From: Lepidodermella squamata
Lineage: Eukaryota > Animalia > Gastrotricha
Length of the DNA: 64,000 bases
Reading direction: 5' to 3'
Assembly (NCBI GenBank): GCA_047495785.1
Contig: JBLDXI010000015.1
Span: 4,960,001-5,024,000, forward strand
A program made the translations under genes and the position numbers. Under the pieces are notes generated by a model. The model saw only the letters and a list, made by a program, of their open reading frames with translations. It searched no databases and was not told where the DNA came from. Shown one piece after another: positions 8,211 through 46,063 of this stretch (position 1 is its first letter; each line of letters begins with the position of its first letter).

Positions 8211-8783
8211 ATGCCTTCCGACATAATGTCCAGCCAGCCTAGGGGTGGGAAAGGAGGCAAAGCACACCAAGCCTCCGTTTCGAAGTCAAGTCGGGCTGGA
8301 CTCCAGTTTCCAGTTGGTCGGATAAGTAAGTTTTCGTTCTGTTATTGTAAGTGATATGGGCCTAATATCTATCGGCTATAATAGTTTCGAGTTAACTTTG
8401 AGTACAATTTGTTCATTTTTATTACAGCGCGATTGATGAAAAAGGGCAACTACGCCGAGAGAATCGGCTCTGGCTCTGCGGTTTACATGGCAGCTGTCAT
8501 GGAATACTTGGCCGCTGAAGTTCTCGAGTTAGCGGGCAATGCAGCGCGCGATAACAAGAAGTCACGAATCGTCCCGCGTCACATCCAATTAGCTGTGCGC
8601 AACGACGAAGAGTTGAATAAACTGCTCGCTCAGGTGACCATTGCCGAGGGCGGCGTCCTCCCTAACATCCAAACCGTCTTACTTCCCAAGAAAACGACTA
8701 CCAAGCCACCGCCAACTGGCCAAAAAGAGAAGGGCAATAAAGCTTCTACGTCAAAAGAGAAAGCAGCGAGCCAAGCGATTTAA
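8211..8783 (+). CDS. H2A: Histone H2A variant with extended C-terminal tail ending SQAI (H2A.X-like); exons 8211-8325 and 8428-8783
   Basis: [15 protein letters not shown]|[14 protein letters not shown]...[19 protein letters not shown]...[15 protein letters not shown]. Intron is GTAAGT...TTACAG. AATAAA at 8860-8865. The start could be ATG 8211 or 8226. Confidence 0.95.
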
Positions 8784-22801: not shown

Positions 22802-25800
22802 CTACATGTCTGTGCTGTGCACGTGCCGCCGTGTCGCCGCCCGCTGCCCTCCCGCCGGCGCCCGTTGTTGCGGCATATGCGGCGCCGTCTCGACGGGCGG
22901 GTGTTCGCCGCGGCGCCACGACTGGTAGCCGAGGAACAGCGGCTTCTGGCTGCGGCTCATCATCAGCACCTGACTGCCCATCCACTTCATCGATACGTCT
23001 ATCGTCGACGGCGAGCCTACGTCAGGTCGCTGGCGGCTGCAAGTTGGCGACGACGACGACGAGCACGTGGCCGATGTCGATGTCGACGACGAAGCGGTTG
23101 ACGCGTCGTGGCGACGATGGCGGCGCCGCAACACGACAAAGGCAGCCGACAGACCGGCGCCAGCTACCACAAGCACGGCGCAAAGAATAGCCGGTAGTAG
23201 AACTTCAACTGTAAGAAAAAACCGCAATTATAGCCAAAAAAATCAAATTCTTAAATTTGCTTACATTGGTGAATCTTTCCAGCAATCATATCAGCGCCAG
23301 GCCGAGGCGCAGCCATGAGGGCTGGTGTTCCTGGCAAGGCAGTGCTGGTCGGGCATTCGTATGTCGGGTCGCTGATAGCTATACAAAAACGTACAATTTA
23401 GCAATTGAATCGAGAAAAAAATGAAAATAATGACTTACTGAGATTGTAGCCGAATGGGCGGCATTCAAAGCCGAGGTCAGGGAAGGCGCGGCGCTCTTCG
23501 GGCAACGCAACGCGGAAGCCGTCGCGGCACCGGCAAACTCCGCCAGCGCACTCCTGGTCGTACCAACCGAAGTAGCATTCGTCGGTGGCGGCGCAACGTT
23601 CGCCGAGCAGCGCGTAGCGTCGACCGGGTGCTGTAGCCGTTGGTTTGCAGCGCCGACCGTCACTAGCCGGTTCCCATTGCGACACGCAGCTGCACACGCC
23701 CTGCGCCGAGCAGTACGAACTGAACGCGCCGCACGTCACCGACTCGTCGCAACGCTGGTTGAGCTGCGACGTCGGCAGGCACTTGGTGCGCTTCTCGTTC
23801 GGCCAGAAGCCGTCGGCGCAAACGCAAGCCGGCGAGAAGCAGTTGCGCTGCAAGCAGTCTGAGTTGGCCGGGCACATGGTGTTTTCATTGCACGGGCTGT
23901 AGACCTTCTCCTGCTCGTTGTAGACGTAGGCCTCAAGCGCCGGCGATTTGAGCTTCGGACGCAGGCGTGCAAAGCTGGTCGGCTCTCCGACACGCACCGA
24001 CGAGTGGTAGGTTGGCTCTGAGATGGTGTCGACGAGCAGCGACTCCGCAACACGGTCTGATGAATCGCCGTAAGGAATGACGGCTGGACCAGCGGCGTCG
24101 TAATGCACACCGACCATGTCACCGACGAGGGCGAGGATCTGCGATTCAGAGTCAACGTGGTACTCGTTGATGCCAACTTGCGTCGTTACAAACGAGTTGA
24201 AGCCGACAAGCGCGTATTGGTTGTTACCGACGCGGCGCCAAATGTCGAAGTAGACGCGGTGGCCAACGGGTTGGCGGCTGTCAAATCGCCACCACTTGAC
24301 GAGACCAGAGCACAGAATCGGCTTAGACACGTAGATCTCGAGGTTGGCAGATGTCTTCGTGTACTGGACCTCGGGCAGCTTGAACCAGTTGCATTTGACG
24401 ATGGGCACGCAGCGTGGGATCGGCGACCAGAAACCGTCCGGCTGGCACGTGATCGTTGCTGTTGAGTCGGTGCGAACTGCGCCGAGCACGCCCGTGTCAG
24501 TCGGGCCGTCCATCGAGTAGCCAGGCTTGCATGTGTAGGTGTAGCGAGAGCCCTGAATGACATCTTGCCCGCTGATGTCGGCGAACGAGATGAGTGGCGG
24601 CGGTCCGCAATGAACATAGGTTGCCTGGACAACGGCTTGCAGACTGGGGATGCGCCATTTCTTGTACAACGGGCCTGTCATGTCGATGAGGCCGTTCTGG
24701 CCGAGGATTCGCGTGTGATCAATGTCCTTGGCATAACCGTCGAACAACTGCTCGCGGCTCCAAGGCGTTGGGTCGACCTCGGAAGCGTGCGGGATGACCA
24801 TGAACTCTTCGGGCAGTTTCGACGAGTCGTAGTGAATACCGACGACGTAGCCCTTCTTGACAACAATAGTCTCGTAGTCCTTGACGACGTATTCTTCAAG
24901 GCCGACACGTGTTGTAACGATTTTGTTGAAGCCGACGAGCTGGAACTCGTGCTCGTTGATGGGCTGCCACACGCCGAAGTAGACGGTCATTCCGAAGCGG
25001 CGGCTGTAGTAGCGCCACGCCGTAACCGCACCGTCGCAGTTGAATGTCATCGTGGTGAAAATCCACAGATAAGAACCGACTGAACGGAGAGCCAGTGGTG
25101 GCGGGTCGAATCCTGCCTTGCATTGCACTGTAACCGGGAAAATAAAAGCAATATTAACATCAGATTCTCACAAATCCTGCAATCGCAGCGATAAGGCACT
25201 CGCAAAACTGAAACATGCGCTTTTTGAGCAAAAACACGCTGAATAGGCGCGCATCAATCATTCGAGGCAGGAAAGTAATTTGAAGCTCAGTTGGCGGCAA
25301 ATAGTTTCAAACAAGAGAATCACGCAGAGAAAACACTCTATTTACCGTAAGTTGTGGTAGCTGAAAAATAAATTAATTCATTAGGACGATCGTGAATTTT
25401 TCGTGCCTAATTCTTGCCACTATATGGGTAATGGGGGACCAGATGGAAATCACTGACGAATGCAACCGCGCGCGTTTTTTTCATCAGAAGAAACTTTACC
25501 CTTTGGCTGGCAAATGGGCGCCGTCGTCCATTGGCGCGTGTCGCTTTGGCACACAGCAACTTCGGGGCCAAGTCGCGAGAAGTTGTCGTAGCACTGATAG
25601 TGCGCCGAATCGCCCGCGTCCGTCGTTCCCTGGTCGAGAACGTAGCGGCCGTAGACAACAGGCGGCGGCAGGCCACATCCAGACATGACTGCATTGCCAA
25701 ACAGATGCGAAAGAGAAGAAAGAAAAGCCAAACGTTAAGCACAGATGAAGACAGCCAAAAAGCGGGGGAAAAACTTACACATAGCATTAGCGACAAGGGC

Positions 25801-28800
25801 GGGTGTCCTGCGCTGCTTTTTCACCGGCCGTTTGAATGAGAAGTAGATGAAACGACGCAGTTCTTCAACAAGCGCCGTATGGTTGATGGCGCGGTCGTTG
25901 TAGTCGAAAAGCGGCGTGCCTGGCGAGTCGAATAAAACAGGCATGGACGACATGTTACCGAGCGCGGCTTGGTCCGGCTGTGGGATGGCGTCGAAGTACG
26001 GAATGACTCCGTCGTTGATCACGTCCTCGTAGTGAATACCAACAAAGTAGTCGGCATCCACCATGATGCGCTCGCTCTTCGGCACTTCGTACTTCTGCAG
26101 GCCAGCGCCTTGCACGAAAACGCGGTTGGAGCCGATCAGTTGGTACAGATCGGCGCCAACTTTGCGCCAAATATCGAAGTAGACAACGGTCGGTGTCGAG
26201 CTGGTAGAGTAGAAGTCCCACCGGTTGATGATACCCTTGCACGCGAAAGTCATCGTAGTGAAGGCATTCAACCACCGGCCCGACTGCTTGCCCGATCGGC
26301 TGAGCAGCGACGGCGAGTAGCCGGCCGCGCAATCCGGAGCGTCACCAGCTAGATGAGGGGAAATTCAAGCGAAAAAATTCAAGTCATGCCACTCAGAGCG
26401 ATAGAATTTTTTTTAAGCAAATATCAAGCAAAGAAGAGAAAGTAAGAAGCGTTTCACACAAAGCGGTTTAAAAGCTGTTCAATTAACGCGGATCGTCGGT
26501 TTGATTTAGCGGAATATTGCTCAGGTACCACAGGCCCCATGGGTTTTGAAATTTAGACTAAAAACATGACTTACCAGTGCAGGTTGGCAATTGAGACCAG
26601 AGCCCTGAATCTTGGCATACGACATTAGCATCGCCGATCATGCGGAAGCTGGGGCGGCACGTGTAGGTGATCACTTGGCCGATCGTCGAGCTCGCCACAT
26701 TTGTGTTGGGATCAGCGTCACGAATCTTCGGCGCCGGGCCGCAACTAGCCGTCGATTTAACGGTCAGTTGAACAGCCGGAATTCGACGTTTCACGTTTGA
26801 GCCGAGTGAGAACCAGCCCTGGGTTTGCAACGCTCGCTTTATCGTTGGGTCGTACTCAGGCTGGACATAGCAATCGTAGAGATCGGACGGCTGGAACGGG
26901 CCGGAATTGACCTCGTCCGCCCACGGTATGACAGCAGTAGAGCCAGGTTTCGAGTAATGAATACCGACAAAGTCGTCCGGTTGAACAGGTACGCGTTGAT
27001 CGGGAGCTAGTTCAAGCACAACACGACCCTTTTGCGTGGCGTTCCAACGATAAGCCGTGACCAACTCGTAGCGATTCGTCATGAGACGGCGCCAGATATC
27101 GATCATAACCTCGGATCCATCGTCGCGAACGCTCAGGAAAATGATTTTATCGACTTCACCCGTGCATGCGACTCGGAGTTGTGGGCAAGCGACCATTTCA
27201 TTAGTCGGCGGCACTGATAGAACAGCATCGGAGCGGGTTGGAACGGTCGGCCCGGCTCGGCAGCGTGAATCCGGAACAGCGACGCACTCCGGTTGGTAGG
27301 GCTGCGTGAATTGACCGGCGACGCAGGAAATCAACAACGGACCGGCGTATTCGAAGCCGGGGGCGCAGTTGTAGACGAAGCTGTTGGCGACAGGGCCCGG
27401 CTGCGGGATGGCGTTGGCTACCAGGGGTGGCAGGCCGCAGCTGAGAGCTGGCGGGGCGCCCGTTGGCAGGTTGTCCGGGGCGTTGCGGAGGCCGCCGAGG
27501 CATTGTGGCGCAGGTGACCACTGGCCGTTCGGGGCGCATTCAATGTAAGGCAGGCCAACAAGTTGGTAAGTCGCGTTGCAAGCAACTGGAAGCCTTGTAC
27601 CAACGGCTGATGACCCGCTGGTCACAACTTGGCCATTAGCAACTGTTGGCGCGATTCCACATCCCGATATCGCAGCACCTGAAAAAATTGGTAAAATTGT
27701 GTTAGATACCAGTTTGAACTTGCACCCTTTTGTATCATATAACGAGCAGTTAGTTAATTATATATTAATTGTTTAATTAGATTCCAAGGCATTTTATAGC
27801 AAGACGCCGCAAGCTTGTACACATGCTCGATAATTACTTTGCGCGCCGCCGACGTTGAGTCGGAACGAGTAGAGCCGTTTCACTGGGCTGAAATTTTCGA
27901 TGCGAACGTTGCCGAAAATTCGCAACAACTCCTGAACATCGTTGCGCTCAAGCGGCGCAGTTCGGCAGTCTTGCAAATCGACAGGCTGGAATCCGTTCAG
28001 CTTCTGCTCGTTGGCGTACGGCACAGCACCGTGCCAGTCGAGGTCTTCGTAGTAGATGCCGAGGAAATCGCCAGTTTGCACAGCGAAGCGCTCGTTGGCC
28101 GGCAGTTCGTACGTCTGCTGGCCAATTTGCGTCGCGTTGATGCGGCTCGTGCCGACCAGGCTGATGGTGCCGTTGCCGTTGTCACGCCACACGCTCAAGT
28201 AGAACGCGGACGCTTCGTCAACAAGGCTCTGGTACTCCCATGACAGCGCCTGGCCTGGGCACGTTACAACCTGGGACGGGCAAACGTTCATCCAACTCGC
28301 CGGCGCAGCAAGTTCTTCCGGCTTCAGGATCAACTTTGACGGGCCGATTTGCGCCGAGCACGGTTTGGTATCCGGTATTTTCGCTGGGATGATGAATTCA
28401 CGCAAAAATTAATTCGAGGATTATTTTAAAAAATGCGCGCGCCCAAAGCTGAGAATTATTAAGGTGGATGCTCACCTACGCAAATGGGTGGCGTCGACCA
28501 GACCAAGCCTGGTAGACAAATCACCCGTGCGGCGCCGAAAAGCGTCGAATTTCCATTACACGTGTACTGAACAAACTCGCCAATTGCCGTCGAAGTTGGT
28601 TGAGCGATCAGCGAGCCTCCAGTAACCTTAGGAGGAGCCGGACACATTGGCGCAGCTGCGCAAATGAAGGCATATTATTATTTATCGATTTCAATCCAAC
28701 TCGCGAATACCCCAAAAGCGTTAATATTACACCAAAGCTTATTTTGCGTGAAAAAATAGAAACCTGCGCAAGATGGCGGCGCGCTCCATTTGCCGTCGGG

Positions 28801-31800
28801 TCCACACGTAATGGTGGCGTTGCCAACCAATGTGTAGCCCGAGCGGCACGCGACCGTTACCTCGGTAGCTGACGGACTGCCAACGATGGCCGCATTAATT
28901 ACAGTGGGCATTGGGCCACACTGAATTTCAACAACTTCACAGTTCAAACACACAGGTTAGGATTGTATTAAGGAGGAGAGTTGGGGGTTTTGTGTTACCT
29001 TGGACGTAAGCCCGCAGGAAAGGCACACGACGCAGCTGCGCGTCGCCAATAAGCACCCGGCCGTATCGTGACATTGCATCGACAATATCGGCGCGGAACT
29101 TGGGCGTCGCAGCGCACGTGTAGAAGTCGCCTGTTTGGAAGCCGTACGTGTTCTTCTGGTCAGCGAACGGAACCACGCCGTGGCGATCAGGCCGTTCGTA
29201 AAAGATGCCCACAAAATCACCGGCTTGAACGCGGAAACGGTCGAAGGTAGGCACGGAGTAAATCTAATTAAACAAAATTATCAGCTTTTCTCGTAATAAG
29301 TTGGCATGTGAATCATTACTATTCGGCCTTGGCTCGACGAGTTGTACGCGTTGTAACCGATCAATCGGTAATTAATGTCATTTTCGGAATCTCGCCGCCA
29401 TACAGCAAAGTAGACGGTAGTCGGGAAATCGGAGGCCGAGTAGAACTCCCAGCTAGCGACTTCACCATCGCAGTCGAATGCCATGTCTGGGCAGGCGTTC
29501 ATATACGTTCCAGGGTGTTCGATGGTTGTCACAGTCTTCCAATCACGCCCAGCTACGCACTGGTTCGAACCAGCTGTGGAAATCAACGACAAACAAACAA
29601 GTCAACACAAGCTCTCATTTCGAAATCGAAAGAATGTAACCCAAAAGCACAGAGTGTTGTTAGTGAAATTTGTTAAGAGTCCCAAAGTAAGAAAGAAAGT
29701 GAAAAGCAACACGTGTTTTGTTCGGGGTGCTATTAACCTGGTTGGCAATAAGGCAACGGCGACCAGTCGCCCGTCGCCAGGCAAATGACTGTGCCGGAGC
29801 CGGTGAGGTTGTAGCCGGTCTGGCACTGGAACTCGACCGTGTCACGCACGGCCGATAGACGCGTCGGGAACGATTTAACAGGCATGGCGTTCATCACCAA
29901 CGGGATCGGACCACAGGTCGCGATCGCCGTGGTCGTCCTAGTCACGAGTGGCGACTGTGTGGTGGTGATATTGGGCCCAACTAAACATGCACACACAATC
30001 ATCAGTAAGACGCATCACAATTACGATCTATTCGAGAAACCAAATCAAGTCTCAAAAATGAAGCTTACCGCAGTAGGGTGCAGTTGTCCAGTTGTTATCG
30101 GTTCCACACATAATCGACGGCTGTCCAACCATTTTAGCCGGAGGTGTGCAGGTGTAAGTCGCCGTAGATCCAACTGAAGTGGCTGCTCCAGTGAATGTTG
30201 CGCCAACTACAATAGGAATTGGCCCGCAGCCTTGTGACGCTGATAGAAAAATCAGGAAAATAATCAATACACGTTCAATGAACAACCCGAATTGAGTTAA
30301 TGTTAAACACCAAAAGCTTAGATATTAAACCCAAAGCGCGCGCGTCGAACACCCTGCACTTACGGACTACTTCGGCTTGCAAGCCGTAGAGACGCGTCAC
30401 AGATGGACCGGGGACGTTGACCTGGCCACGCATCGCGACTTGCTTCAGAATGTCACTCCGATAGATTTCAGTATCGACACAGTTATACAAGTCACTCTGC
30501 GAGTACTGACCGCGCTGGTTTGAGCTCACAAATGGTATAACACCGTACAAATCAGCTTGTTCGTAGAAAATGCCGACAAAGTCACCCTTCCGTACGGTTA
30601 TACGGTCGGGTTTGGCGATCTGTATAAGCTCCTGACCGATGCGAGTTGCATTCGCCAAATTGTACCCAACGAGGACGAAATCATTCGGGGTAGCATCGGC
30701 TTTTTCCGAGCGGCGCCAAACGCTCAGATAGACCGAGGTGCCGTCGTCCAAGATGCTGTAGAAGTTCCAACTGGCGATTTGGCCGTCGCATGGGATAGTC
30801 AAACCCGGGCAAACATTCAGCCAAGTTCCTGGCAAACCAGGCGCGCGGGTGAACGCGTAAGACGGTACAATTTGCCCGACGATGCAAGATTTCGAATCTT
30901 ATTAAGAAATTAATCCAAGTTATTAAATCCGAGAAATGGTAATTAAGCTAAACCCGAAGCGAAATAATGCAAGATAAAAACCTCTGCAAAACGGCGGGTC
31001 ACTCCACGTCAGGTTATCCTGGCAATAAATCTGTGACTTTCCAACCAGTGTGTACTCGGGACTGCATGCGTAGGTGACAATAGCACCAACTTTACGACTA
31101 GTGCCCGTTTGGGTGGCATACGGGACAAACGGGGCGTCCTGGCACACCTTAATGCCTGTATGAACAATTTATATTTCAGTTTGATTCAATGTTAACTCGA
31201 GTTATTAATGAGCGCAAGTAATCCCAAGCTTGATTTCTATTAGTATCAGGACGCCAAACGAACCAGAAACGAAAGCCTGGACTGATGGGATGCGGCGAGG
31301 GTACTCGGTTTCGACCGTAAAGTAACCCTGGGTCGACTGCTGTCCCATAATAGCTGGCGAGTACTTCTTGCTAGTTATGCACTGTACAAGGTCGCGTTCT
31401 TGGAAATTGAGCAGTTTGCTGGAGTCGACAAATGGAATGACAGGCGAATCATTGGCGCGGTCGTAGAAAATGGCGACAAAATCGCCCTTTTTAACCACGA
31501 TTCGACTCTGCGGCTCGACGTAGTAGGTTACCTTGCCGCGTACATTCGCGATGTACTTGTTGGTGCCGACTAGTACGAACCGCTCGGCATTAGGAGCCGT
31601 TCGTCGAACTACAGCCAACGTTACTTGGGTGCCGTCGGCTGCGTCAGAGTACAAGTCCCATCTCTCTATTTCGCCGTCACAGGTGAAGACAAGTCCCGGG
31701 CATACATGCAGGTCTGTGTTCGCGTCATTCGCCTTCACATTAGGCACAGGCAAGCCACCAGTGCAAAGGGCAGAGGGCGCAGCTGAATGGGTGTTCAAGT

Positions 31801-34800
31801 TACACAGTCGCAAATTAATTACTCGTAAGTGATAAATTTAGTTATTAAAATAATATTATAACCCCAAAACACTCTGAATGCGTTGATCGAAAATTAAACC
31901 GGAGGGAAGCTCTTTTCATGCAATCAAACCTTCAACTCGCGATCTTTCTGGGGCCTTTCGCGGCTTCGGCTGGGTTGTGCCATTAAGCGGCTTAGCCGTG
32001 GAAAGACTTTCCACGCACGTGACCACCCCAACCCAAACACCGCGGCGACACTCCAGTTTATTTTCGGAGACCGGGTCGAAGCCGGACAGGCAGTAGTAGA
32101 TAACAACACTGCCATCACGTGGCGCTCCGACATAATGAGGCACAGCTACACTTCCTTTGAACGTAGGCAACGGCTCGATGCAAAGTGGATCTGAAATAAA
32201 ATTGGCAAAAATCAGAATTGGGCAAGGAAACGGCATTATATCAGGGGTGAGTGATGGGCATGCTTGTTAACTATAGGGTAGAGCCATATTATTATACAAC
32301 CGCTACACCCGTGATGACTGAAAAAGCGGAGCCTACTGTTTCTGAATAAGCACGGGCTGTAAGCGAAGATGTCTTTGCGTCTGAATAGGGCATTCTGCCA
32401 ATAGGGCAGGGCCTGCGAAGCATCGCACCCCGTTCCAGGCGGTTCATCGTAGTCTTAATAAAGCATTATTTATCAGCAATTATTTGCGGTTTTCAATATT
32501 TGGCGAGTAATTTTGTCGTAATAAAGCTTGATACGTACCATCGTTGTTGAGGCGAATGTTGTTGGCGGGATTGTTTGAACGTGGCCAGGAATTAACAGGG
32601 AAATTCTTGCCACCCAGACACACAGGCAGCTGAGACCATAGGCCGCTAGCTAGGCATTGGATCACAAGTTCGCCAACCGGTTCCAGGCCCTCGTCACACA
32701 CGTACTCGGCCGTGTCTCCAGGACGGGAGACGTTGCCATCGACAGCGAACGGCAGTAGTGTCGCGTTGGCAACATACGGCGGGGATCCACAAGTAATTGT
32801 AGGCGCTCGAGGTACGCAATCAGGTGCCGGGGTCCAATGCCCGGTCGTCGTGCAATGAATATTCGAAGGCCCTTTAATTTCGTAACCCTCCATGCAAATA
32901 ACGTCGGCCCGGTCACCTTCAACCGCGGTCATTCCACTGAAATACGGCCAAACACTTCCGTGGGCAATTGCAGGCAACTCTCCGCATTGAACTGAAACAA
33001 TTGATAGACCAGTATTATTAAAAAATTATGCTGTAGATTGAAAACTCACTTTTGCAAACGGGTAGTGGTTGAGACCAAGAGCCTTTATCGGTGCAAAGGA
33101 TTGTCGCATCTCCGTTGAGCGAGAAACCCGGGGAGCAGGTTACGGTTGCTTTGTTTCCAACATGGCTGTGGTTTCCCTCGTACTGCGGCACCGCCATTCC
33201 ATTGGCAATGAACGGCATCGGGTCACAGGAACGCCGCGCTGGCTGAGGGACGCAATGCGGAGCAGTAGACCAACGCCCTGTGCCGAGGCATGTTGTAACA
33301 GCGGGGCCCACCAGGATGAAACCTGGTTGGCAAACGAAGTAGATCGAATCGCCGACAAGAGACAGCGCACGTCCGTAGAAAGATGTCGTTTGAACTGAAT
33401 TCTTAACTTCCGGACCTTCGCCACACGAGACCTGGCATGATGGCGCCTCAGACCAGGTATTGGAGTCCGAGCAAGTCACGCGGGGATTGCCGATCAGAGC
33501 ATAACCACTTAGACATTCGAAAACAACGGAATCACCTGGGTGGCTCACTGATTCGAAAAACATGGGTCGAACTACAGAATTAGCTACGACAGGGACTTCA
33601 CCACAGCCGCCACTTGATGTTCGAGAGGTGGTTTTCAAGCAGTTAGGTGTCGGCGTCCACAGTCCATTCGGCTGGCAAAGAGAAACGGCTGGTCCGTGAA
33701 GAACAAAGCCATCATTGCAGGTGTAAGTAACAGCGTCGCCTTCAATGCTCGACCGGTTCGTGTACGGAGTCGCAACTTGCGAGTTGGGTATATTGACAGG
33801 ATTACCACATGAAGTTTTACAAGTCGGCAGGAACGGGTACCAGGCACCTGAAGGGGTGCAGTGAACAATGTCTGAACCTAGCAGGGTGTAGCCACGGATG
33901 CATCTGTAGCGAACGCTGTCGTTGACTCGACTGTTATTGGCGATGAAAGTAGTCAAAATCTCGCTGTTGACGACCATAGGTGGGCCGCCGCAACCACGGT
34001 TAATGTTTTCACAAGTCGGAAGGTCCGTCCATTGGCCGGGGGTGACGCAGAAAACAAGAGACGGGCCGCGTATCTCATGCCCGGCGTTGCAAACTACCAG
34101 CAATGAGTCACCTTCAACGGCTTTCGGCGTCGCGTACATGAGATCAAGCCGAGCGTTTCCGATGGTTGGAGGTTTAGGGCAAACTGCTTTACAAGTCGGT
34201 GGGTTGGACCATTCGCCATTCTCGAGGCAAACGACCTGAGCCGAGCCCGCCATCACGAAGCCGGAATTGCACGTGTAATCCGCCGAAGTTCCGATAGGGT
34301 GGGTAAACTTGTTGAAGGAAAGAAGGTCGACCCCGGGCGCCGGTTCATTGTGCACGCGGACGATGCTGTTCGGTACCTGAGGCGGTAAGCCACAGCGAAC
34401 TTGCACTTTGCAGACCGAGCCTGGCTGAGACCACGTTCCGTCATCTTGGCAAACAACTTTCAGCGACGTGTTATCAACTGCTGATTCGTAGCCTTCGACG
34501 CAATCGTACGTGACGACTAGCCCTCGCGGTGGGTGAATCGGAATGGTGTTCAACGGCGAGATGGCAGCTTTCGGCAACATTGGAGGCGGGGGACAAACGA
34601 CTAAAAATAAGAAAAATAAATTAGGGCCAAGTCGATAGAAATCCCAGTAAAAAATTGCGTAAAACAAAGCGAAATATCACACATGAGAAGAAATATGGCA
34701 TAACATGTTCTGTTATTTCGTCCAAAAGCAGAGATAGAATAGATGGCTCAGATAATATTTTGTTACCGAAGCAGCAAGCGATATCGTTTCTTTTCGCGGG

Positions 34801-37800
34801 ATATTTTACCTTTCAATTTCTCAGCTGATTTTCACTGCAGTCGACCGGAACGCGGCTACCCGTCGGTGAGCTAAAACCTAGGTTAAGAAGCTTCCCAAAC
34901 CCGATTTCTTTTCTCTTCAACGCATTACAACAGTGTTTGACCGATTTTTTCAGGTAAATTATAAAATAATTAAATAAGAAATAAGCACCTTTGATGTGAG
35001 CTTTCCAGCTGTAAACACGTTTAACAGGTACACCAGTAACAACCACGCCACCTTGTCGAGCCATTTGGTTGTTGATATCTTGCCTGAAGGCACGTTGAGA
35101 CACGCATGACCGCAGTTCATTGGCCGAATAGCCACCCAGCGTCTGGCTGTCTCGGCTGTCAGCGAAGGGTACAACGCCAGGGCTGTTCTCGTTCTCGTAA
35201 AACAGACCGATAATGTCACCACGGCGGACGAGGATGCGCTCTCCGACCGGTACGACAGACAGTAAGGGTCCGGTTTTGGTCGCGTTGACAGCGTTGTAGC
35301 CGATCAGTTTGTACAGCGAACCCTCCTGACGCCATACAGACAGGTAAACGGGTGTCATGTCATTGCGAAGGCTCAACACCTCCCAGCGCTCGATTTCACC
35401 GTCACAAGGCACGACCTCGTCCGGGCAGATGTTCAACCAGTTGCCAGGGTCTGGCAAAACGTTGGGATTGCTTGCGTATAGCGTCGGCCCAACACTGCAA
35501 CCAGGCGATTCTGAAATAATTTTTCAATAATAATTACGCTGATTCAACTTGAAATGCGACAAACCATCGCAAACAGGCGCGTCTGACCAGAGATTTCCGG
35601 GTAAACACGTGATAGCAGAAATTCCCTGAAGTGTGTAGCCATTGCTGCACGAGTACATGGCCGTGTCGCCAATGAGGCTGTCACGGCCGCTGTAAGACGT
35701 GCGGACAGACGAGTTCGGCACGCTGGGGGGTGGTCCACAGGTTCCACGAGCTGAAATAATGATAGAAACAACGCATTAGTACATGTTAGATATTTCAATG
35801 AACCCGCGAAATAATAACCAAAAGCAATATAATACGACACCGAAATTTCCCAACAAGCTCTTCGGCGACTCAAAAGCCTCGACTCGGGTCAAACCTTCGC
35901 AACGTGGTGCCGGCGACCACTGTCCGTTGGCATTGCAGACGATGGTGTCAGGTCCACGAATCGAGAATCCGGGCAAACAGCGGAATCGAACGACAGAACC
36001 GATTTCCGAACTTTCACCGAACTGAGACGAGTTCGACACGGTCGGAATAGGGCCGCAAGTCGGAACGGCCTGGATGTAGGCCTTCCACTCATAGACGCGG
36101 CGGACGTTTGGATCGATAAGTGTGACGTAGTTTTTGTTTCGCATCTGTGACGACACTTCGTAGCCAAACATGCGAATTGAGATGCAGTCGACAACGTCTG
36201 ACGCGGCGAATGTCCGTCGGTTATCCATGGTGCCGTACGGCACGACACCCCGCGAAAATTCTGAGTCGTAGTACAAGCCGAGGAAATCGCCAGGCTGTAC
36301 GTAGATTCGCTTATCCGCCGGCACGTCGTAGACAATGCGTCCGATGTTAGTCGCGTTGACGACGTTCGAACCGACCAGATAGAAATTGTTCTGGCCAATG
36401 CGCCGCCAAACGCCGAGATACACCGAGCCAGAGTCGATATTGGAGTAAAACTCCCACCGGCTCAATTGGCCCGAGCACTGGAAACTAACGGACGGGCAAA
36501 TGTTGAGCCAGTTGCCTGGGTCGACCAGCTGCTGGGTGGGCGGGTTTGACCCCGTTAAAACCCCAGCGCCAGCTGTGCAAGCGGTCGATGCCAGGCAAGT
36601 CGGTGGTTCGGACCACGTTCCGCTGTTAAGGCAGGTTACCGATAGATTACCCGAGGGCGTCCCTCCTCCGATACAGGTATAAGAAACCATGTCTCCTGGT
36701 CGCGAGTCACGACCCGACCACGACAAAGCAGTAACCTGTCCATTCGCGACAGCAGGCGCTTGTCCACAAGTCGATGAAGCTGTGAATTTTCAATTCAAAA
36801 CGGAAAATGTTTAAAATCAGCCCGATAAACAACAACGTGAATCCCGCGCGCGTTTTCTACACCAAAAGCTGGGTCTACCATTCTACCTGAGCAAGTTGGG
36901 AAGTCGCTCCAGACACCCTGTTGGGTGCACGTGATAGTCGTCGGGCCGCTGAGCTGGTAACCGGGCGAACAGCGAACATTGATGACAGCGCCCAGCTTAT
37001 TACTGGCGCCACTGACCGCGCCGCCTCTGATGTCCGGAATCGGGCCGCAGTCAGTTGGACTACCCGGGGCAATGAAGCCTTGAACGCTGGGTATACGACT
37101 GACGAAATTTGTTGTAGCTGTCAAGTAGCCGACGGTGTTCATCGCCCTTTGCACGTCAACTTGGTTGAGCGGGAAATTGAGGCACTGGTACAACTGGCCC
37201 TGGGTGAATGGGCCGAGGTTGTCGGGTGCCGCGAAAGGGATGACACCAGTTCGGAACTTGTGGTCGTAGTAGATTCCCACAAAGTCGCCCGCATTAACGT
37301 AGATTTGTTCGTTTTCGGGTACAACGAATCTGATGAGGCCGAGACGCGTCGCGTTGTAGACGTTATAACCGACCAGTTGGTACTTGGACGGCGACGTTGT
37401 GCGCCAAACTGACAGGTAAACAGAGGTACCGTCGTCACGTACGCTTTGAAACTCCCAGCGCGTAACTTTTCCCGAGCAAGTGAAGTTCATTTGTGGGCAA
37501 AGATGGGCCCACGTCAGGGGTACGTGCAGCGTTTTAGCTGGCACGGCGTACCCAGTCGAGCACGATTTCGGCTGTCCCTCTTCCAACAGGCCTGAATTGT
37601 TTTTTTGTCAAATATCGGTTAAAATGTGATTGGTCAACAAAGAGCGATTCGACTGACGACGACCCCAAGCAAACAAATAATATGGTGGAGAGCTAAAATG
37701 TCGAAACTTACCGACGCAAACAGGTAGGTTGAACCAGAGTCCTGATTGAAGACACGTGACTGTCTCACTGCCTTGCATCGAGTAAGACGGGTTGCAGGCG

Positions 37801-40800
37801 TATCGAACAGTTGATCCGATCGAATTACCGCTCGATGCCGCGATGTAGCCGTTCGGAAGAGGCGGAGGCGGGCCGCAAGTTGTTGGCGTGTTTCCTGCAA
37901 CAGAGCAAAGGATTTGTTAGATTATTGCTCAATTATGAAACCAGTGAAACCCGAGATGGCTTCTAATAAGCCGTTATAATAGGTAAACCCAAATGCAAAA
38001 TGGTGAAATTTTCTACCTCCTTCACGCGGATTTGTTGAACCTTATAAAGTAAAAATGTTCGGATAGAATTGGGTACTTGAATTTGGGATGGAAAAATGAG
38101 GCGGCTCATTCTTCTCGTTATACTAACCGACGCATTGCGGCACGGGTGACCACTGGCCAGAACTCATGCATGTAATGATATCACTGCCTCGCATTTGGAA
38201 AGTCGGGTTGCACGTGTACTTGACATTGGAGCCGGGAGCATTGCTGCTGCCGGGTGTAGCCACGTAGCCATTTGGAATCGTTGGCGGCTGGCCACACGTC
38301 ACAGTGTTTGCTATAAAAATCATCGCAATCCCGATTAGAATTCATCGAAACAAAACTAAGGCTCAATTCTTCCCATAGCAACCTTAGATTTGCGTGATAT
38401 TAAATTATTTTGTAAGTGTTATTAACCCAAAAGCAAAAGTTTTAAGAAGTAGCGGGATCCCGAGGCACTGAGTGTTAATTACGCTGGCAAGTTGGGGCTG
38501 GCGACCAGGTGAGATTTGACTGGCAGGTGATGTATTCGGAGCCGACGAGCCGGTAGCCGTCGTTGCAGCGGTACATGACGCGAGAGCCGACTTCGGTGAG
38601 CTCGCCGAATGAGGCGGCGTTGTTGACGAACCACGGCGCCCCGCAGTTACCAGGCTTGCTGGGCACGCAAGCCGGAACCGCAGACCACGTCGAGTCAGAA
38701 CGGCACGTGACACTTTCCGACGAGGTCAACTGGTAATTGGGGAAGCACTCGTAGACAACAAGTTGCGTTGTCTGCAGCTTGATGCGGCCGTTAGCAATGG
38801 CTGGCGCTGGTGGGCAGGGCATGACAATGGCGACGCATTTAGGCGGAGCCGTCCACTGCGCACTCGATTGGCAAGTGATCGACCCCTGGCCATCGAGGCG
38901 GAACCCGCGCTGGCACGTGTAGCCAACCACAGTTCCAATGGCGCTGTTCGTTGAATTGGCATCAGCGTTTGTTACGACTGGCGGTGCGCCGCAATTTCTT
39001 GTCGGAGGCGGCGTGGTACCGACGGGTAGGCAAGACGGGAAAGGCTGTTGCCACAAGCCGCTAGAGCACGAAATCGCCGCCGGACCATAGAGGTAAAAGT
39101 CTGAGGTTAAGCAGGCGTAGGTCGCTCGTTGGACGGTGTTCGAAAAAGTGGCGATGTAGCCATTATTAATGTTAGGTGGGGCGCCGCATGAGCCAGCCTG
39201 TTGGCAAGTCGGCATTGTTTCCCACTGAGTCCCGTTTTGACACCGTATCACCGGCTTGCCGACCAAAACGTAGCCGGTGAAACACTGGTACAATGTTTGA
39301 GTAGTGTTAGTCATGACAATCATTCCGTTGGGAATATCTGAAGGAGCGCCGCAGTTGCGACGAACGCAAGACGGCGCCGTAGTCCAAGATCCATCGGCTT
39401 GACACGTTATGGTTTCGGAACCGACTAGCATCCAACCAGGGGCGCAGCTGTAGGTTGCAGTCGAGCCGACGCTTGACGAGTCGCCACGGCTCACCGAGTT
39501 GGCGACGAATGGGACAGCCGGGCAGGCGACAGAAACGCATCGTGGGGATGATGTCCACGTCCGAGTCGCCGGGTTGCATTGCACAGACTCGGGACCGGCA
39601 GCGAATGAGAAGCCTTGGTTGCATTTGTAAACGACAGCCGAATTATTCTGGCTGGCAATCGCTGCGTTCGGTACGGTCGGAGCAGTACCGCATGGCGATC
39701 CACTGGGGACACAGCGAGGCACGTCAGACCATGACCCGGTGTTCTGGCAAGTCACCGCAGCACTACCAACCAGGGTGTATCCGGCGGCGCAGGAGTACTG
39801 GAAAAGCGAGCCAACGCCTGTGTCGGAGCTAATCGGACGACCAGCTCCGTTGGTGAGTTGAGGCGGCTGGCCGCAATCGCGAACGCACGACGGCAGTTGA
39901 GACCAAGTTCCATTCGTCTGACAAACGATGTAACCCATACCACGCATGAGATAGCCAGTCTGGCATGTATAGCTGACTACAGAACTGGCAGTTCGAGCTG
40001 TCGAATTAGCGTTGCCGTTAGGTACCGTTGGAACCGCTGGGCATGTGGTGGCACCGACGCAACGTGGCGGCGTCGACCAGGTTCCAGTGGTTTGGCACGT
40101 GACTCGGTCATTACCGACCATCGAATAGCCGGCTTGGCATGTGTAAGTTAGCATCGAGCCAACAGTGGTGGCTGATCCACCGGCTGGGTTCGTCCACATC
40201 GAGTTCGGTACGGCTGGCGGGGTTCCGCAGTCACGTTCGCAGCGAGGAGCGTTGGACCAAGTGCCGTTCGAAAGGCAGACTATCGTCGACGGGCCGACTA
40301 CAGCGTATCCAGTTAGACACTGGTAGCTGATGTAGGTGCCAAGGGTAGTTTGGGACGAATTTGCAGTAGCAGCTGGGACTTGTGGCACTGATGGGCAGGA
40401 AACAGCCGGAGCTGCCGGGGTGCAAAACGGGAGTTGGGACCACTGGCCATTCTGCTGGCAAACCGACTGGCGTGGGCCTTGTAGTACATAACCTGATAGA
40501 CAAGTGAAAGCCACGGACGCGCCAATGTTATTCGCTGTCCCGATAGCAGCACCATTCGTGATGGATGGTATCGTGCCGCAGGTTGATCGCTGTTGGACGA
40601 CGCACGACGGAATCGGAGACCAGCGGCCATCGGATTGGCAAACCACGGTGTCATTACCGACTAGGGTGTAACCTACATCGCATTGGTACTTCAGCACAGC
40701 GCCGACGAGGTTCGAAGATCCAATGACGATCGCAGACGAAACAATCGGGATGGTCGAGCAAGATACGACAGACGTCGTTGCTATTATCAGGAAATCAACT

Positions 40801-43800
40801 CAAGTTAATTCAGTGTTAAGAGCGGCATAGCCACTTTACGCGATATCAAATCCGTTGCGTTTACTCGCTGTATAAACCCGAAGCGTGAAGCGTCAATTTG
40901 GGAGCGTAGAAACAAAATAGCATGTTCAATTAATAAAAAGCGGGTGGGACATACCTGTGCAGGTTGGCGGGGTGCTCCAAGAACCGTTCGGTTGGCACGT
41001 GATTTTGTTATTGCCATTTAGCTTGAAGCCGTTCGAGCACGCGTAGTAGACTGAAGATCCGAGCACGGTGGCTGAGAATTGCGGCTGGGCGTTCGATACC
41101 GTCGGCGGCAGGCCGCAGTCGACCTGGCACGTCGGCGGCGTCGACCACATGTTGCTTGTCTGTTGGCACACGACCTGCGCGTTTCCGATCAGCGTGAAGC
41201 CGACGCGGCACGAGTAGAACGCAGTTGCGCCAGGCTGTGTGTTGTCGAACTGCACATCGCCGTTAGCGACCGGTGGCGGGCGACCGCAGCCCGGGGCCGC
41301 GGACGAGGCGGTGCACGATGGCGGCGACGTCCAAGTGCCGGAGCGCTGGCAGACGACGGTTGAGGCGCCTTGAAGTTGGTAGCCGACGCGGCACGAGTAG
41401 AGCGCCGTTGATCCGACTTTGCTAGCATCGAACTGAACATCGCCATTTGTGATCGCCGGCGGTCGTCCGCAGTCGACCGTCGAGCCGGTAGTTGTCGAAG
41501 CTGAAGAGGCAAGCGGTGAACACAAAACGAATTAAAGCGGGTAAGGTTAGGAACAGTTAGGCAAAACACAACATGACAAAACATATAAGAAGCGATAGGA
41601 AGCATAATGTAATAAAGCGGCAAGTAAACATAAGCGGACCTTGGTGACAGATGGGCGGCACGGACCAGCGGCCGTCCGGCTGGCAGCGGATGACAGGATC
41701 CCCAAGCATTTCATAGCCCGGTTGGCAGCGCCACGTGATGATGGCGCCCACCGAAGTGCGATCGCCAAAGTGATCAGCGTTCGGCACTTCGGGTATCGTA
41801 GAGCACATGACGGTGGCTGAAGCCCGATAAGTAACATAACATTATTAGTAAGTGCATAAATCCCAAAAGCAACAAATAATAAAATTGCACCGAAATATTA
41901 GCAAAAATGACTCACCGACGCAGGCTGGCGGAGTTGACCAGGTGCCGTCTGATTGGCAAACCGTTGTAGCCGGGCCTTGCAGGGCGTAACCAGCCTGGCA
42001 CGTGTAGGTAACACGGGCGCCAAAGCTCTGGTTTTCCCCATTCGAATTCGAGTTCGGAACAGTTGGAGGCTGGCCGCAACCGAGTGGAACTGAAGTTCAA
42101 ACAATTCATTAGCACTCACTCGTCCAGCTTAATCATTTAATCCGACACTTACCACAGGTAGTTCCTTGTTGTCGAGATTTCCCTGGATCGCAGACGCAGA
42201 CCGGGTTGACAGATGCCTTGGTGCACATCAGCAAAGCGTCGCATTCGAAGTTCTTCGAGCAAGCGTCGCCGAATGTCTTGCGACGAATCGTCGAACAGCC
42301 CCATTTACGAGCCGATCGGCGATTCGCCTCGCGCCGCACGCCAGTGATTTGCGTAAAGATCCAGCACTGTCCGTTGTACGGGTTGAAGTACGAAATACCG
42401 CGGCACTCCTTCGAGTACTTGCAGTACTTCTCGCAATCACCAAGATTCTGCACCTCTGGGTCATTTATGATGACCGAGTCGCCGATGAGGGCGACGTCGT
42501 AGCGAAGTTCAAAGTCAGAAATCAACGGCGTGCGGCAAGTGTCCTTGCAGAACTTTAGGAAGGCCTGATAGCCGGGCGCCAAACGCACCTCGGAGCTGAC
42601 GTAGGAATAGACCTTGCAAGACCCGCGGCTGTAAGAAACGGCCATGCAGGAGGATTGCTGACGGCAGAAGTTCCAGCAGTCACTAGCCATTGGCATGGTG
42701 ATCTCACTAAAAATGCCCTTGAAAGTAGCGTCCTCGATCTTCTCCTCAGCACAATCTAGATGGTTTCAATCAAACAAAACTCGCAAGTTAACAGCTGATC
42801 TCACTTGGAATTCAGGACAAATAACTAAAAAGTGAGTATAGTTTCTATGTTTAAAGGCGTAAAGCATGCAAAGCGAAATAAGCTCAAGTAAGAATAAAAG
42901 CGAGTGGGTGGCCGAATACCTTGCCGAATGACAGCCCGTGCGAGGGGCAGGTTGGCGTTTCGCTGGCGTAGACTCGGGTGCGCTGAGATAATTCGTTCGG
43001 CCTCGATCGTCTCGTGGAAGATGGGACCGGCAACAATGTCGGAAAGTTCGGTGTCGGAGAACGGCCCGACACCGGACTCGAAGAACGGGATGACGCCCTT
43101 GTTGGCGCGGCGGCTGTAGTGCACGCCGATGACGTCGCCTGAGCGCACCGGGATCTGATTCTCCTCGGGCACCTTATAGATGTTTGCGCCGCGCTTTTTC
43201 GGCTTCACGACGTTGTAGTCGACAAGTTCGTACTGGTTGAGCCCGCGTGGGCGCCACACAGCGAGAAAAGCAGCGGGCACGGAGCCGTTGCCAGCTACCG
43301 GTGCCGTGTTGAAATACTCCCACTCCTCAATGAAGCCGTTGCATTTAAGCGGTTCCGACGAAAATATTGTCAGATGTGCACTTGGCGGTTTAAGGCCATC
43401 TACAGGCGCTAGGGGCTTGCCCCAGTTACACGTGCTCGCTATATTTTAAAGCAATAGGTAAAATGTTAAGTCAAGCGTCAAGGAAAGCATTCTGTCGTCT
43501 TTTAAACGGTTAAAATTGCGTGCGCTCGGAAAAATTGTTACTTTCAAGCGTGCATTTTTTCAAACATGCGAAAGCAGTCACTTTTTACACATAATAACAT
43601 ATCAACAGATAAAGCCGAACGAACCTGATTCCATGGCGCGCAGACACCGAGGCGGCTGTGACCAGCTGCCAGAAACTTGGCACAACACCTCGGGAGCGCC
43701 TTGCATTTCGTAGCCGGTGTTGCACGAGTATATCACCCGGGCACCGATCGTTCGCTCGTAGTTCAGCGGGGCTAACGTTGCGCTGTCAACACGAGGCGCA

Positions 43801-46063
43801 TCGCCGCAGTTGACACCTAGAACGAATGTTACATCGGTTAATAATCAACAATAAAAAATCAGAGATCGAAAGTCAAGTGAGAAAAACAGCTATTAAAAGC
43901 ACATCAATAATCCCACAACTCTACATGTTGTCTAAATCTGTTGAATGAAATATTTGTCTAATCTACATTTTTGTAACAAACACACACGGAAAACGTTAAA
44001 ATAGGTTTAGGTGAAAGCGAAAATATTGTATAAAGCAATGTAAGGGTTTAGGGATAGGTGCAGAATAGTTAGACTGGGTTAAGTTCCGGGCAGACCTGTT
44101 GCATCTGACTGAACGGCTTGCTTTGGCACATGAGCCCGAGGCTTTGCCAGCCTCATCGGCTTGGCATGCTCAACACTCGGGCGCATTTGCTGCAGAAAAT
44201 CTGTTACACCAATTGATTTAAAGTTAACACGGTTAAATGATACTAGAAATAATGACTGGCAATAATTTGTTGACGCTCAATGATTAAAAAATAGGTATTT
44301 TGATTATATCGAACCTGGGCAGGTGTAGAACAAAATCTGGAACTGATCCATGGCAATATCACTGTACGAGGCACCTCCGACAATGCCTTCGAATGAGATC
44401 ATGAATTTCTAAAAGTGAAAAATTCGATTCGATATTATCCGAGAGGTAGGCTGAAATAACTTACGTTGATGTCGTTCGGAAGGTCTGAGAGCGCAAGATC
44501 GGGCACAGAGGCTTGAAGCCACCGATCCTGTTGCGAACCCGACTTCTCCCATAGAAGCTTTTTCGCCTCGCCGTAATTGAGATAGACATTCAACGTTCCG
44601 ATGGTGTTGCCGTACATGTGATAGTAAAAATGAACATTGAAGCAAATGGCGCGGCCTCGCATTGTTGCGGTTTCGAAGGCAGGGCTCGTCAGAACGGCGC
44701 GGTCGAGCAGATTGCGGCGAGTCGACTCAATGTATACGAAGGCGCCGTTGCCATTGATGTCGCCATCAGGGCCAGTGCCAGTTGTCGGCGTCGCTCCCGT
44801 CTGCCACGACCAGTCGAAGATGTCGGCATCTTTCATCTGCGAGAACCCGCACAGAGACTCATCGAATGAGCAGGAAAAATTGCCAACAACCGACGCCGGG
44901 CCTTCGACGTCTGGGCAAGTGCCAGCTAAGACGAAAATGTCATCGATTGCAATGTGGGAGTTTGTTCCGCCACGAATGCCGTCGTATAAAATTTGGAAAG
45001 AGCCGGATATCTCCAGGGTACGTTGATAAAAGTGCCACATGTTACCCAGCGATTCGCCGCCAAGCGTGGTCAAAGTTGCAATTTGCCCTGAAGTCTTTTG
45101 CTTAACACGCAACGATCCGATCGCAGTGCCGAACATGTGGTAGTAGAACTGAAGGCAGCAACGCGAAGTCGGGCACGAGATGTCACCCGAAGACATCGAA
45201 GTAACAGAGCCGTCCATGCCTTGGGCTGAGTTAGTATACATAAAATAGCCATCTTTACTTTTCAAGGTGTGGTCGATCGATGGTCCAGTTTGGGAGGTGG
45301 GCGGGAATCCTTGAGCTCGGGCCCATGAGAAACCGAACTGCTGATCAGGTTGAATCGCAAAGCCACAAGTGTCCTTCTCGAAATCGCAGCGAAACACTAC
45401 GTTGCCAAGAGCCATAACAGCGATCAACGCTGGAATTTGGTTGTTTGTTTCGGACGTAGGCGCCGCTAACGAGCCGCCAGCCGCTGCTAATGAAGCTTCC
45501 AAGTCACCATGAGCCAAATCAATACGCGCTACATCCGAATAATCGACGGTAGTGAACGGGCCTGGTTCGGCCTTGCTGAAGTAGGGTATGACTCCGACGG
45601 CGCCGTTTAGGCTGTCGTAGTGGTAGCCGATGCAGTCGCCTCGGCGCACTGCGATGGGACCACCAGACGCGTCACCGAGCGGCACGTAATTGTGGCCGAA
45701 CTTGTTGGCGAAGACACGAGTCGACGCCAAGCGCCGATACCGGTTGACACCGGTCGGCCGCCATACGTCCAGGTACATTACCGTATTATCACTAGTAGTA
45801 CTGTAAAACTCCCATTGTTGCACTGCTCCGTCGCAGTCGAACGTTAAATTCGGGTATATAAACAGGCCTCGCAGCGGCCTGACTTGAGGGTTGCTTTCAA
45901 TCCGCCGTCCGGCGATGCAAACACTTTCACCTGGAAAAAAACTCGAAACTAGAGGTGGATTCGATTTTCAATTGAATTACGTACCTGAAACGAGAATAGA
46001 TTGCCTGAATTGCGCCAAAAACGCGCACAAGGCAACAAAGCCGAGAGATATCCTCGTTAACAT
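22802..46063 (-). CDS. Giant (~6,100 aa, hand-summed) type I membrane protein: signal peptide, 13 copies of an unassigned ~160-aa domain, ~46 Sushi/CCP, 2 MAM, 2 PAN/Apple, EB/EGF-like modules, TM helix and short cytoplasmic tail; ~37 exons
   Basis: Signal exon 46063-45985 (MLTRISLGFVALCAFLAQF...). I traced a chain of GT-AG, frame-preserving exons down to the TM exon 23208-22802 (VLLPAILCAVLVVAGAGLSAAFVVL-RRRHRR). The Sushi pattern C-xx-P...Y/F-x-C-xx-G(Y/F)...C...W-S-xx-P-x-C recurs throughout. One candidate linker exon (~32453-32337) is uncertain. Confidence 0.85.
23439..23900 (-). other. About three membrane-proximal EB/EGF-like Cys-rich modules
   Basis: PCNENTMCPANSDC...CVCADGF, LNQRCDESVTC...CSCVSQW and LGERCAATDEC...CAGGVCRCRDGF. 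Confidence 0.65.
32600..34600 (-). repeat. Second tandem array of 10 Sushi/CCP modules
   Basis: Eight units in exon 34600-33050 and two in exon 32991-32539. Confidence 0.9.
38483..42089 (-). repeat. Tandem array of 18 Sushi/CCP modules, 13 of them in one 2.3-kb exon
   Basis: Counted from repeated four-Cys/Trp Sushi units in exons 42089-41916, 41816-41640, 41500-40955 and 40780-38483. Confidence 0.9.
42153..42755 (-). other. Two PAN/Apple-like modules plus one EB-like Cys module within the giant receptor
   Basis: DCWNFC...CMAVSY...CKVY and DCEKYC...CRGISY...CWIF fit the PAN pattern C-xxx-C...C-x-x-x-S-Y...C-x-L/I. They are followed by FGDACSKNFEC...C...CVCDPG. Confidence 0.75.
44315..45400 (-). 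other. Two tandem MAM domains within the giant receptor
   Basis: CDFEKDTCGF...W...TGPSIDHT...GYFMY...CLQFYYHMFG..IGSL...IAIDDI, then CSFDESLCGF...FDW...TGP.GD...FVYIES...FYYHMYG..IGTLNV...W...DIAMD. Confidence 0.9.

Follow-up and report, generated by a model that had tools for sequence, protein, structure and literature searches.

Thirteen copies of a predicted extracellular beta-sandwich domain without a Pfam model in one giant Sushi-mosaic gene of the gastrotrich Lepidodermella squamata

In this study, we analysed a stretch of 64,000 nucleotides from Lepidodermella squamata (NCBI GenBank assembly GCA_047495785.1, contig JBLDXI010000015.1, positions 4,960,001 to 5,024,000 of the forward strand; hereafter the window), in which a gene on the minus strand carries thirteen copies, D1 to D13, of a domain that is absent from the models of Pfam. 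We consider it likely (probability roughly 0.7) that these segments are independently conserved extracellular beta-sandwich copies on one giant receptor, that they form a family of their own within the fold group of DUF4082, PHR and the Cwp84 lectin-like domain, and that they serve this protein as the binding units of a multivalent receptor. The homology of the copies, the predicted fold, the range of the family, the purifying selection and the frame-based gene layout are established here and form the ground of this proposal. An earlier sequence-only reading of the same DNA was right in what it observed and largely right in how it interpreted it, as judged by the profile, the library scans, the AlphaFold2 model and the comparisons with DUF4082.

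A profile (A1) was built from twelve of the copies, with the eighth left out. In the six-frame translation of the whole window it matched exactly thirteen places, all on the minus strand, and the coordinates that had been estimated for thirteen homologous segments agree with these matches within a few tens of bases. D8 is split into two halves by a 62-nt intron (29316-29255) and both were recovered, which is a non-circular check because D8 is absent from the profile. The copies are about 160-178 residues long, with ~170 being typical, and all thirteen have open reading frames. Pairwise identity between the paralogous window copies is 22-43% (mean 32%). Twelve copies align over about 170 columns, with C3, C31, G33, G77, Y101 and P111 invariant (numbering of copy 3), and the mutual profile matches are significant over the full ~170 residues. 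The consensus noticed in the first reading was reproduced by the alignment (C..G, F.C.G....WEFYS, VYL.VWR, Y.LVG.N, G...Y.VP, RI.V..GDFVGI.Y, GVIP, R.P...A.V). The copies are given below, all on the minus strand, with the extent of the domain, the profile match (from high to low coordinate), its E-value and the identity to the orthologous copy on a metagenome scaffold that is described further on.

D1, 45401..45919, minus strand; match 45919-45410, E 5e-53; only the C3-C31 pair; ortholog 70.6% identical
D2, 42918..43436, minus strand; match 43433-42921, E 2e-54; C3-C31 pair only; ortholog 70.1%
D3, 37059..37568, minus strand; match 37568-37068, E 4e-67; four cysteines; copy used for modelling; ortholog 78.3%
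D4, 36061..36585, minus strand; match 36582-36067, E 6.5e-67; ortholog 83.7%
D5, 34987..35505, minus strand; match 35502-34987, E 1.8e-62; ortholog 85.8%
D6, 31259..31777, minus strand; match 31765-31262, E 1.3e-60; no counterpart detected in the orthologous locus
D7, 30359..30892, minus strand; match 30892-30362, E 4.8e-66; ortholog 77.1%
D8, 28994..29565 (exons 29565-29317 and 29254-28994), minus strand; match 29562-29317 plus 29260-28997, E 1e-24 and 2e-22; ortholog 82.9%
D9, 27845..28366, minus strand; match 28363-27848, E 7e-60; ortholog 84.8%; variants in a second DNA data set synonymous in 10 of 10 cases
D10, 26750..27268, minus strand; match 27265-26753, E 1.5e-62; ortholog 91.7%
D11, 25861..26337, minus strand; match 26334-25864, E 4.6e-50; C3-C31 pair only; the C-terminal end may run into the next exon
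D12, 24619..25128, minus strand; match 25125-24622, E 4e-53; C3-C31 pair only
D13, 23914..24399, minus strand; match 24393-23917, E 6e-49; C3-C31 pair only

Across the family, the signature consists of C31-x-G33, W38, W55-R56, P111 and the motif G94-D95-x-x-G98-x-x-Y101, within which D95, G98 and Y101 are best conserved. Two further cysteines, C24 and C129, are both present in 31 domains, both absent in 45 and unpaired in 3. In the window, copies 3-10 carry both, while copies 1, 2, 11, 12 and 13 carry neither. Because these two cysteines occur or vanish together, they support an optional disulfide (C24-C129) in addition to the invariant C3-C31 pair. An N-x-T/S sequon is found at one shared position in seven copies.

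The AlphaFold2 model of copy 3, made from a 12-row alignment, was confident (predicted local distance difference test, pLDDT, 92.7; predicted template modelling score, pTM, 0.89). It shows eleven strands and one helix and is otherwise all-beta. Together with the sandwich-type folds of its neighbours, this model supports the beta-sandwich that had been suspected from the letters. A Foldseek search of the PDB returned nothing at E<=1e-3. Structural neighbours were obtained with VIA-align from 48,161 PDB chains, and they are lectin-like, carbohydrate-binding module (CBM)-like and phage receptor-binding-type sandwiches (VIA-align value last):

9jwb_Z, cyanophage A4 capsid protein, 10.0
8h2i_bG, PBCV-1 capsid protein, 9.8
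4ci7_A, Cwp84 lectin-like domain, 9.8
9d93_Pa, Bxb1 tail tip, 9.7
9euf_0, phi812 baseplate, 9.2
9kqz_A, PVA esterase N-terminal domain, 8.6
7tog_A, acetyl-xylan esterase CBM-like domain, 7.9

A second AlphaFold2 model, made from an alignment of DUF4082, reached a pLDDT of 90. Its best PDB neighbours are those of the window domain, namely 4ci7_A, 9jwb_Z, three PHR domains, 8h2i_bG, 9d93_Pa, 9euf_0, 9kqz_A, 7tog_A and 7tok_B. By ESM features, the Lectin_like, PHR and DUF4082 clusters rank at 0.86-0.88. As far as the models go, the domain is thus a member of the structural group that holds DUF4082, PHR, the Cwp84 'lectin-like' domain and several phage tail and capsid surface domains; the grouping is by common top PDB neighbours of the two AlphaFold2 models. 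In sequence and setting, the members of this group differ from the window domain. The Cwp84 lectin-like domain of Clostridioides difficile (PF18560; 4ci7) is 6% identical to it, has no Pfam match to it and occurs as a single copy fused to a protease, whereas the window domain forms an array in a predicted receptor. PHR domains (PF08005; MYCBP2/Highwire, BTBD1/2) are cytoplasmic, lack disulfides, bind proteins and have no sequence match to the window domain. The phage and virus surface domains (9jwb_Z, 8h2i_bG, 9d93_Pa, 9euf_0) and the esterase CBM-like domains (7tog, 9kqz) are 6-10% identical and belong to another biological setting, and no sequence link to them was found by PHROGs, tblastn or Pfam.

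In domain libraries, the copies have no entry. Against Pfam-A (Pfam 2025), nothing meaningful at E<=1 was obtained with the ten window copies that were scanned one by one or with the eight that form part of a family alignment (A2). A Pfam scan of 47 family members returned noise only, apart from one animal protein, P0074. PHROGs gave nothing below E 0.03, and a profile of the 47 members found chance matches only (E>0.3) among PDB sequences. A word-indexed protein search with A2 yielded 13 short fragments without Pfam labels or names. In longer homologs, Pfam labels the neighbouring modules and leaves these stretches blank. No Pfam profile of CUB, FA58C, Ig, FN3, C-type lectin, vWA or MAM matched over the segments. 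Because of this, the domain is not CUB, FA58C, Ig, FN3, C-type lectin or vWA, and its first description as unassigned holds as far as Pfam 2025, PHROGs and PDB sequences go. Methyltransf_FA, suspected from a similar-looking motif, had no match on the copies and did not overlap with the domain in the Owenia protein P0077. Judged by these comparisons, the domain is a sequence family of its own, absent from Pfam models. The family itself appears to be new; its fold is known, and the logic of a module alternating with CCP (Sushi) modules is familiar.

The closest described relative is DUF4082 (PF13313), a secreted bacterial and phage domain with the same predicted beta-sandwich. Its N-terminal ~70 residues align strand for strand with the family (G-x-I-T-x-aromatic-x-aromatic-Y, L/V-W, a G-rich turn, P-I-x-V-x-x-G), and both are repeated modules of large secreted proteins, where they stand beside Ig-like or cadherin-like modules. 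The window domain differs in being about 25 residues longer, in its one or two disulfides and N-glycan sequon, in the GDFVGI-Y and GVIP motifs, and in having a helix in its C-terminal third; DUF4082 has an NGxLxxL...NYW tail of its own. The gathering threshold of PF13313 (28.4 bits) was not reached by any of the ten singly scanned copies or the eight in A2, which gave no match to it at E<=1. P0074, the best-scoring member, which matches the window profile with E 1e-19, scores PF13313 with E 6.2e-6 and 26.7 bits. For profile comparison with hhalign, we used 22 genuine DUF4082 domains from Bacteroidota genomes (A4), the P0074 subfamily (A5) and the bacterial members of the family (A6). The family alignment A2 matched A4 with E 1.6e-3 (probability 16%) and the P0074 subfamily matched A4 with E 2e-4 (probability 46.5%, 33% identity over 67 columns), while the window copies matched the P0074 subfamily with a probability of 99.75%. 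No DUF4082 was found in the tail proteins of phage Bxb1, of which gp29 has no Pfam family, and tblastn of P0074 against phages gave nothing below E 0.4. A loose resemblance to DUF4082 and carbohydrate-binding modules had been pointed out before. At the level of the fold it is closer than loose, given the common PDB neighbours and the 26.7 bits of P0074; Pfam-level membership is not reached. In our reading, DUF4082 and the domain belong to one fold group and probably have a remote common ancestor, with the domain as a separate family and not as a DUF4082 member.

The fold itself is not new, and it is the function of the domain, that is binding, the nature of the ligand and multivalency, that we infer. 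Since the modelled fold is lectin-like, the domain probably binds something outside the cell. Each D domain would act as a unit that binds a glycan, a surface polymer of another kind or a protein, and the Sushi modules would be spacers that display the thirteen non-redundant units from a membrane anchor. The whole protein may act as a multivalent adhesion or recognition receptor. By analogy of fold, context and co-occurring domains, we favour glycan or other polymer ligands. Most of the structural neighbours face outward on phage particles, S-layer proteins or carbohydrate esterases, and one of them supplies sugar-contacting residues: three such residues of PbeAcXE come from its CBM-like domain (PMC9105624). 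For the Cwp84 domain, which has Ca2+ bound, carbohydrate binding has been proposed (PMC4089489). In addition, the family travels with lectin-type domains. Its partners in other proteins include ApeC, astacin, C-type lectin, CUB, kringle, F5/8C, ShK and SUEL lectin domains, and also AbfB, LamG, SRCR, collagen and LDLa/laminin modules.

Several points speak against the proposal of a binding domain from the DUF4082 fold group. The sequence link to DUF4082 is weak (hhalign probabilities of 16-46%), PF13313 matches nothing in the whole genome, and the bacterial members compared with DUF4082 (A6 with A4) gave a non-significant E of 0.16, so that they do not bridge the two families. No public RNA run was found to contain the gene; the only run that contains it, a data set here called X1, is DNA, with contigs that cross introns without joints. 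W38, W55, R56, G77, D95, G98 and Y101 are located in predicted strands, where their role may be limited to stabilising the fold; in particular, the conserved aromatics, which the first reading took to be exposed, may be core residues. The authors of the Cwp84 structure pointed out that the usual sugar site is missing from their domain, which may have another role (PMC4089489), and the fold group also contains the protein-binding PHR domains.

The two last points lend themselves to the main alternative explanation, in which the domain is not a lectin and would instead mediate protein-protein interaction or homophilic adhesion or act as a rigid spacer, and the receptor would be like a giant adhesion molecule that contacts proteins through its D modules. 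PHR domains are members of the same fold group that bind proteins, and the domain of Cwp84 may, according to its authors, not bind sugar at all (PMC4089489). The family, however, co-occurs with C-type lectin, SUEL, F5/8C, ApeC, LamG and AbfB domains, and the remaining fold neighbours are for the most part CBMs or surface domains of phages that come into contact with polysaccharides. We regard this alternative as possible and, on balance, rather unlikely.

A further objection concerns novelty. The domain could already be named in InterPro, CDD, SMART, PANTHER or CATH/Gene3D, or it could be a divergent DUF4082, in which case there would only be an annotation gap. P0074 comes near to the PF13313 threshold (26.7 against 28.4 bits) and the fold neighbourhood is identical to that of DUF4082. 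In RefSeq, the homologs go by generic or borrowed names and no others ('uncharacterized', 'polycystin-1-like', 'perlecan-like'), so that a signature based on structure could have escaped notice. On the other hand, the window copies have no meaningful Pfam-A match, and P0074 was the only one of 35 scanned members from other organisms to come near DUF4082, still below the cut-off. The silence of PF13313 in this genome and the empty precomputed Pfam fields of the homologs point in the same direction. A full-text literature search for DUF4082 gave two incidental mentions and no paper on such an animal domain. Taken together, we think it quite improbable that the family has been named before or is a divergent DUF4082.

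Conservation of the single copies was assessed with two further sources of DNA. A metagenome scaffold (L004) holds the orthologous locus in the same order, with D1, MAM, D2, PAN, a Sushi run, D3-D5, a second Sushi run and further copies. Each of its nine copies has a single partner among window copies 1-5 and 7-10, with 70-92% identity between partners and about 32% to the remaining copies. For D6, alone among copies 1-10, no counterpart was detected in L004 (10596-13909), which may reflect either a lineage-specific gain here or loss or decay in L004. Between the window and L004, nonsynonymous differences per site (pN) amount to 0.07-0.22 and synonymous differences per site (pS) to about 0.82, which is saturated; for this reason, no dN/dS ratio is given. 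Columns that vary between paralogs are still 72% identical between orthologs, so that each copy is constrained in its individual surface and the array is old, without homogenisation or redundancy. The DNA data set X1 covers window positions 27800-32300 without rearrangement and is about 1.4% different, mostly by transitions. It probably represents the same species, as a different haplotype or strain. All 21 of its listed variants inside D7-D9 fall on third codon positions, and 20 are synonymous. Both comparisons show purifying selection on the copies. That the repeats are decaying or unexpressed sequence, as a pseudogene array or an assembly artefact, would fit the lack of an RNA run and is effectively refuted by these selection data: 13 of 13 copies are open, order and protein sequence are kept in another organism despite saturated synonymous sites, the variation within the species is almost purely synonymous, and an independent DNA run shows no rearrangement in the region that it covers.

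From reading frames and homology, all thirteen copies appear to sit in one ~23-kb gene that runs on the minus strand from 46063 to about 22805, the 3' boundary being approximate. The predicted product is a single, giant type-I membrane protein with roughly 5,500-6,000 residues. Its order is signal peptide, D1, two MAM domains, D2, PAN, D3-D13 interspersed among ~40 Sushi modules, EB, a transmembrane helix and a short tail. Exon joins were taken from the reading frames, except for two introns that were read directly, the 62-nt intron in D8 and a 54-nt GT-AG intron (45984-45931). The latter has a GTACGT donor, a polypyrimidine tract and an AG acceptor and joins exon 1 to the D1 exon in frame (phase 1). 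The parts of the gene outside the thirteen copies are as follows.

45985..46063, minus strand: exon 1, with the start codon (46063) and a signal peptide (Met followed by a hydrophobic stretch)
44438..45388, minus strand: two MAM domains (PF00629, E 3.9e-54, 2 stretches)
42136..42696, minus strand: PAN/Apple region (PF00024 / PF08277)
37716..42078, minus strand: first long Sushi/CCP run, about 19 modules (PF00084, 3 stretches in 40929-41525 and 11 in 38478-40697; count from the Cys/Trp pattern)
31919..34667, minus strand: second Sushi/CCP run, about 11 modules (PF00084, 8 + 2 + 1 stretches; Cys/Trp pattern)
23401..23900, minus strand: membrane-proximal EB/EGF-like cysteine-rich modules (PF01683 EB, E 1.7e-10)
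22805..23227, minus strand: transmembrane exon, with ~25 hydrophobic residues, then RRRHRRH and a Ser-rich cytoplasmic tail (read from the translation; no Pfam match)

The Sushi/CCP modules were recognised by PF00084 with E down to 6e-121 (for 11 tandem modules), and their four-Cys/Trp pattern has ~40 matches. An alternation of the new domain with Sushi modules had been described for all thirteen copies. It applies to D3-D13, where one or two modules lie between neighbours, except for ~11 between D5 and D6, and Pfam places single Sushi modules between most of the later copies; it does not apply to D1 and D2, which are flanked by MAM and PAN. CSMD/SVEP1-type proteins are very long type-I membrane or matrix proteins in which Sushi modules take turns with modules of a second kind (CUB in CSMD). 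The gene resembles these families in having a putative binding-type module that alternates with Sushi. It differs from them in that its alternating module is not CUB, pentraxin, HYR or vWA, none of which is found by Pfam, and the likeness is one of architecture.

An exhaustive profile search recovered 1369 representative proteins at E<=1e-3, of which 241 were matched at E<=1e-10. Members were named from gastropods (Haliotis, Babylonia, Bulinus), nemerteans (Tubulanus, Lineus), an annelid (Owenia), a sea star (Patiria) and hemichordates (Ptychodera, Glandiceps), and others come from a choanoflagellate, from Candidatus Entotheonella and from a deltaproteobacterial metagenome-assembled genome (MAG). 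Many distant matches span only profile positions ~20-120, so that the N-terminal two thirds form the conserved core. The choanoflagellate protein P0083 (Choanoflagellata sp. UC4, 1640 aa) has the domain N-terminal to a tyrosine phosphatase with SAM and WW domains. Because this protein carries the domain, the family, by its sequence distribution, is older than animals and occurs in a choanoflagellate protein that resembles a receptor phosphatase. The bacterial copies lack the cysteines and are true members (hhalign probability 98.2%, E 4e-14). Two of these proteins, P0097 (Candidatus Entotheonella) and P0054 (Deltaproteobacteria MAG), contain LamG or TSP3 repeats and keep the GD(F/Y)IG and (V/I)IP motifs. 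Since Entotheonella lives as a symbiont of sponges, a transfer between host and symbiont, in either direction, is conceivable.

In the 121-Mb genome of Lepidodermella, at least 150 matches (248 candidates) were found, clustered on several contigs. Seven of them lie on the same strand at 5027908-5041197 of the contig analysed here (C15), 3.9-17 kb past the end of the window, in a neighbouring paralogous Sushi-mosaic gene. Dense clusters are present on contig C19 (853-876 kb, 2476-2521 kb, 2828-2833 kb, 3239-3251 kb and 3431-3443 kb) and on C55 (101-118 kb, 146-150 kb and 515-530 kb), and also on C21, C13 and C32. The cluster at 853-876 kb of C19 contains about 25 matches that span only profile positions ~2-140 and possibly represent a shorter variant of the domain. 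Tentatively, and with little confidence, one could imagine an unrecognised pre-animal family of extracellular recognition domains that was expanded here, in clusters of giant Sushi-mosaic receptors, to well over 150 modules, each with its own conserved specificity, which jointly would form a germline-encoded repertoire for microbial or self surfaces.

If the family has no entry elsewhere, it constitutes a large gap in domain annotation, with ~1,400 representative clusters, which come from six or more animal phyla and also from a choanoflagellate and some bacteria, and with more than 150 modules in this genome. Its definition would correct 'uncharacterized' or borrowed names such as polycystin-1-like and perlecan-like, and it would place beside DUF4082, PHR and the Cwp84 lectin-like domain a sister family that is eukaryotic and extracellular. 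As a small, disulfide-bonded and confidently modelled unit, the domain offers a tractable way into what the giant Sushi-mosaic receptors of invertebrates recognise.

Five other open reading frames of the window were noted beside the gene. Four were read from their translations: a low-complexity, Ser/Pro/Gln-rich frame of 1408 aa (2364-6590, plus strand), a histone H2A (8409-8783, plus strand), an EH-domain-like frame (52221-53066, minus strand) and an RRM plus zinc-finger frame that resembles CPEB (60138-61394, plus strand). The fifth (11783-13306, minus strand) is UFL1-like by a single database match with 54% identity, to a homolog that carries PF09743.

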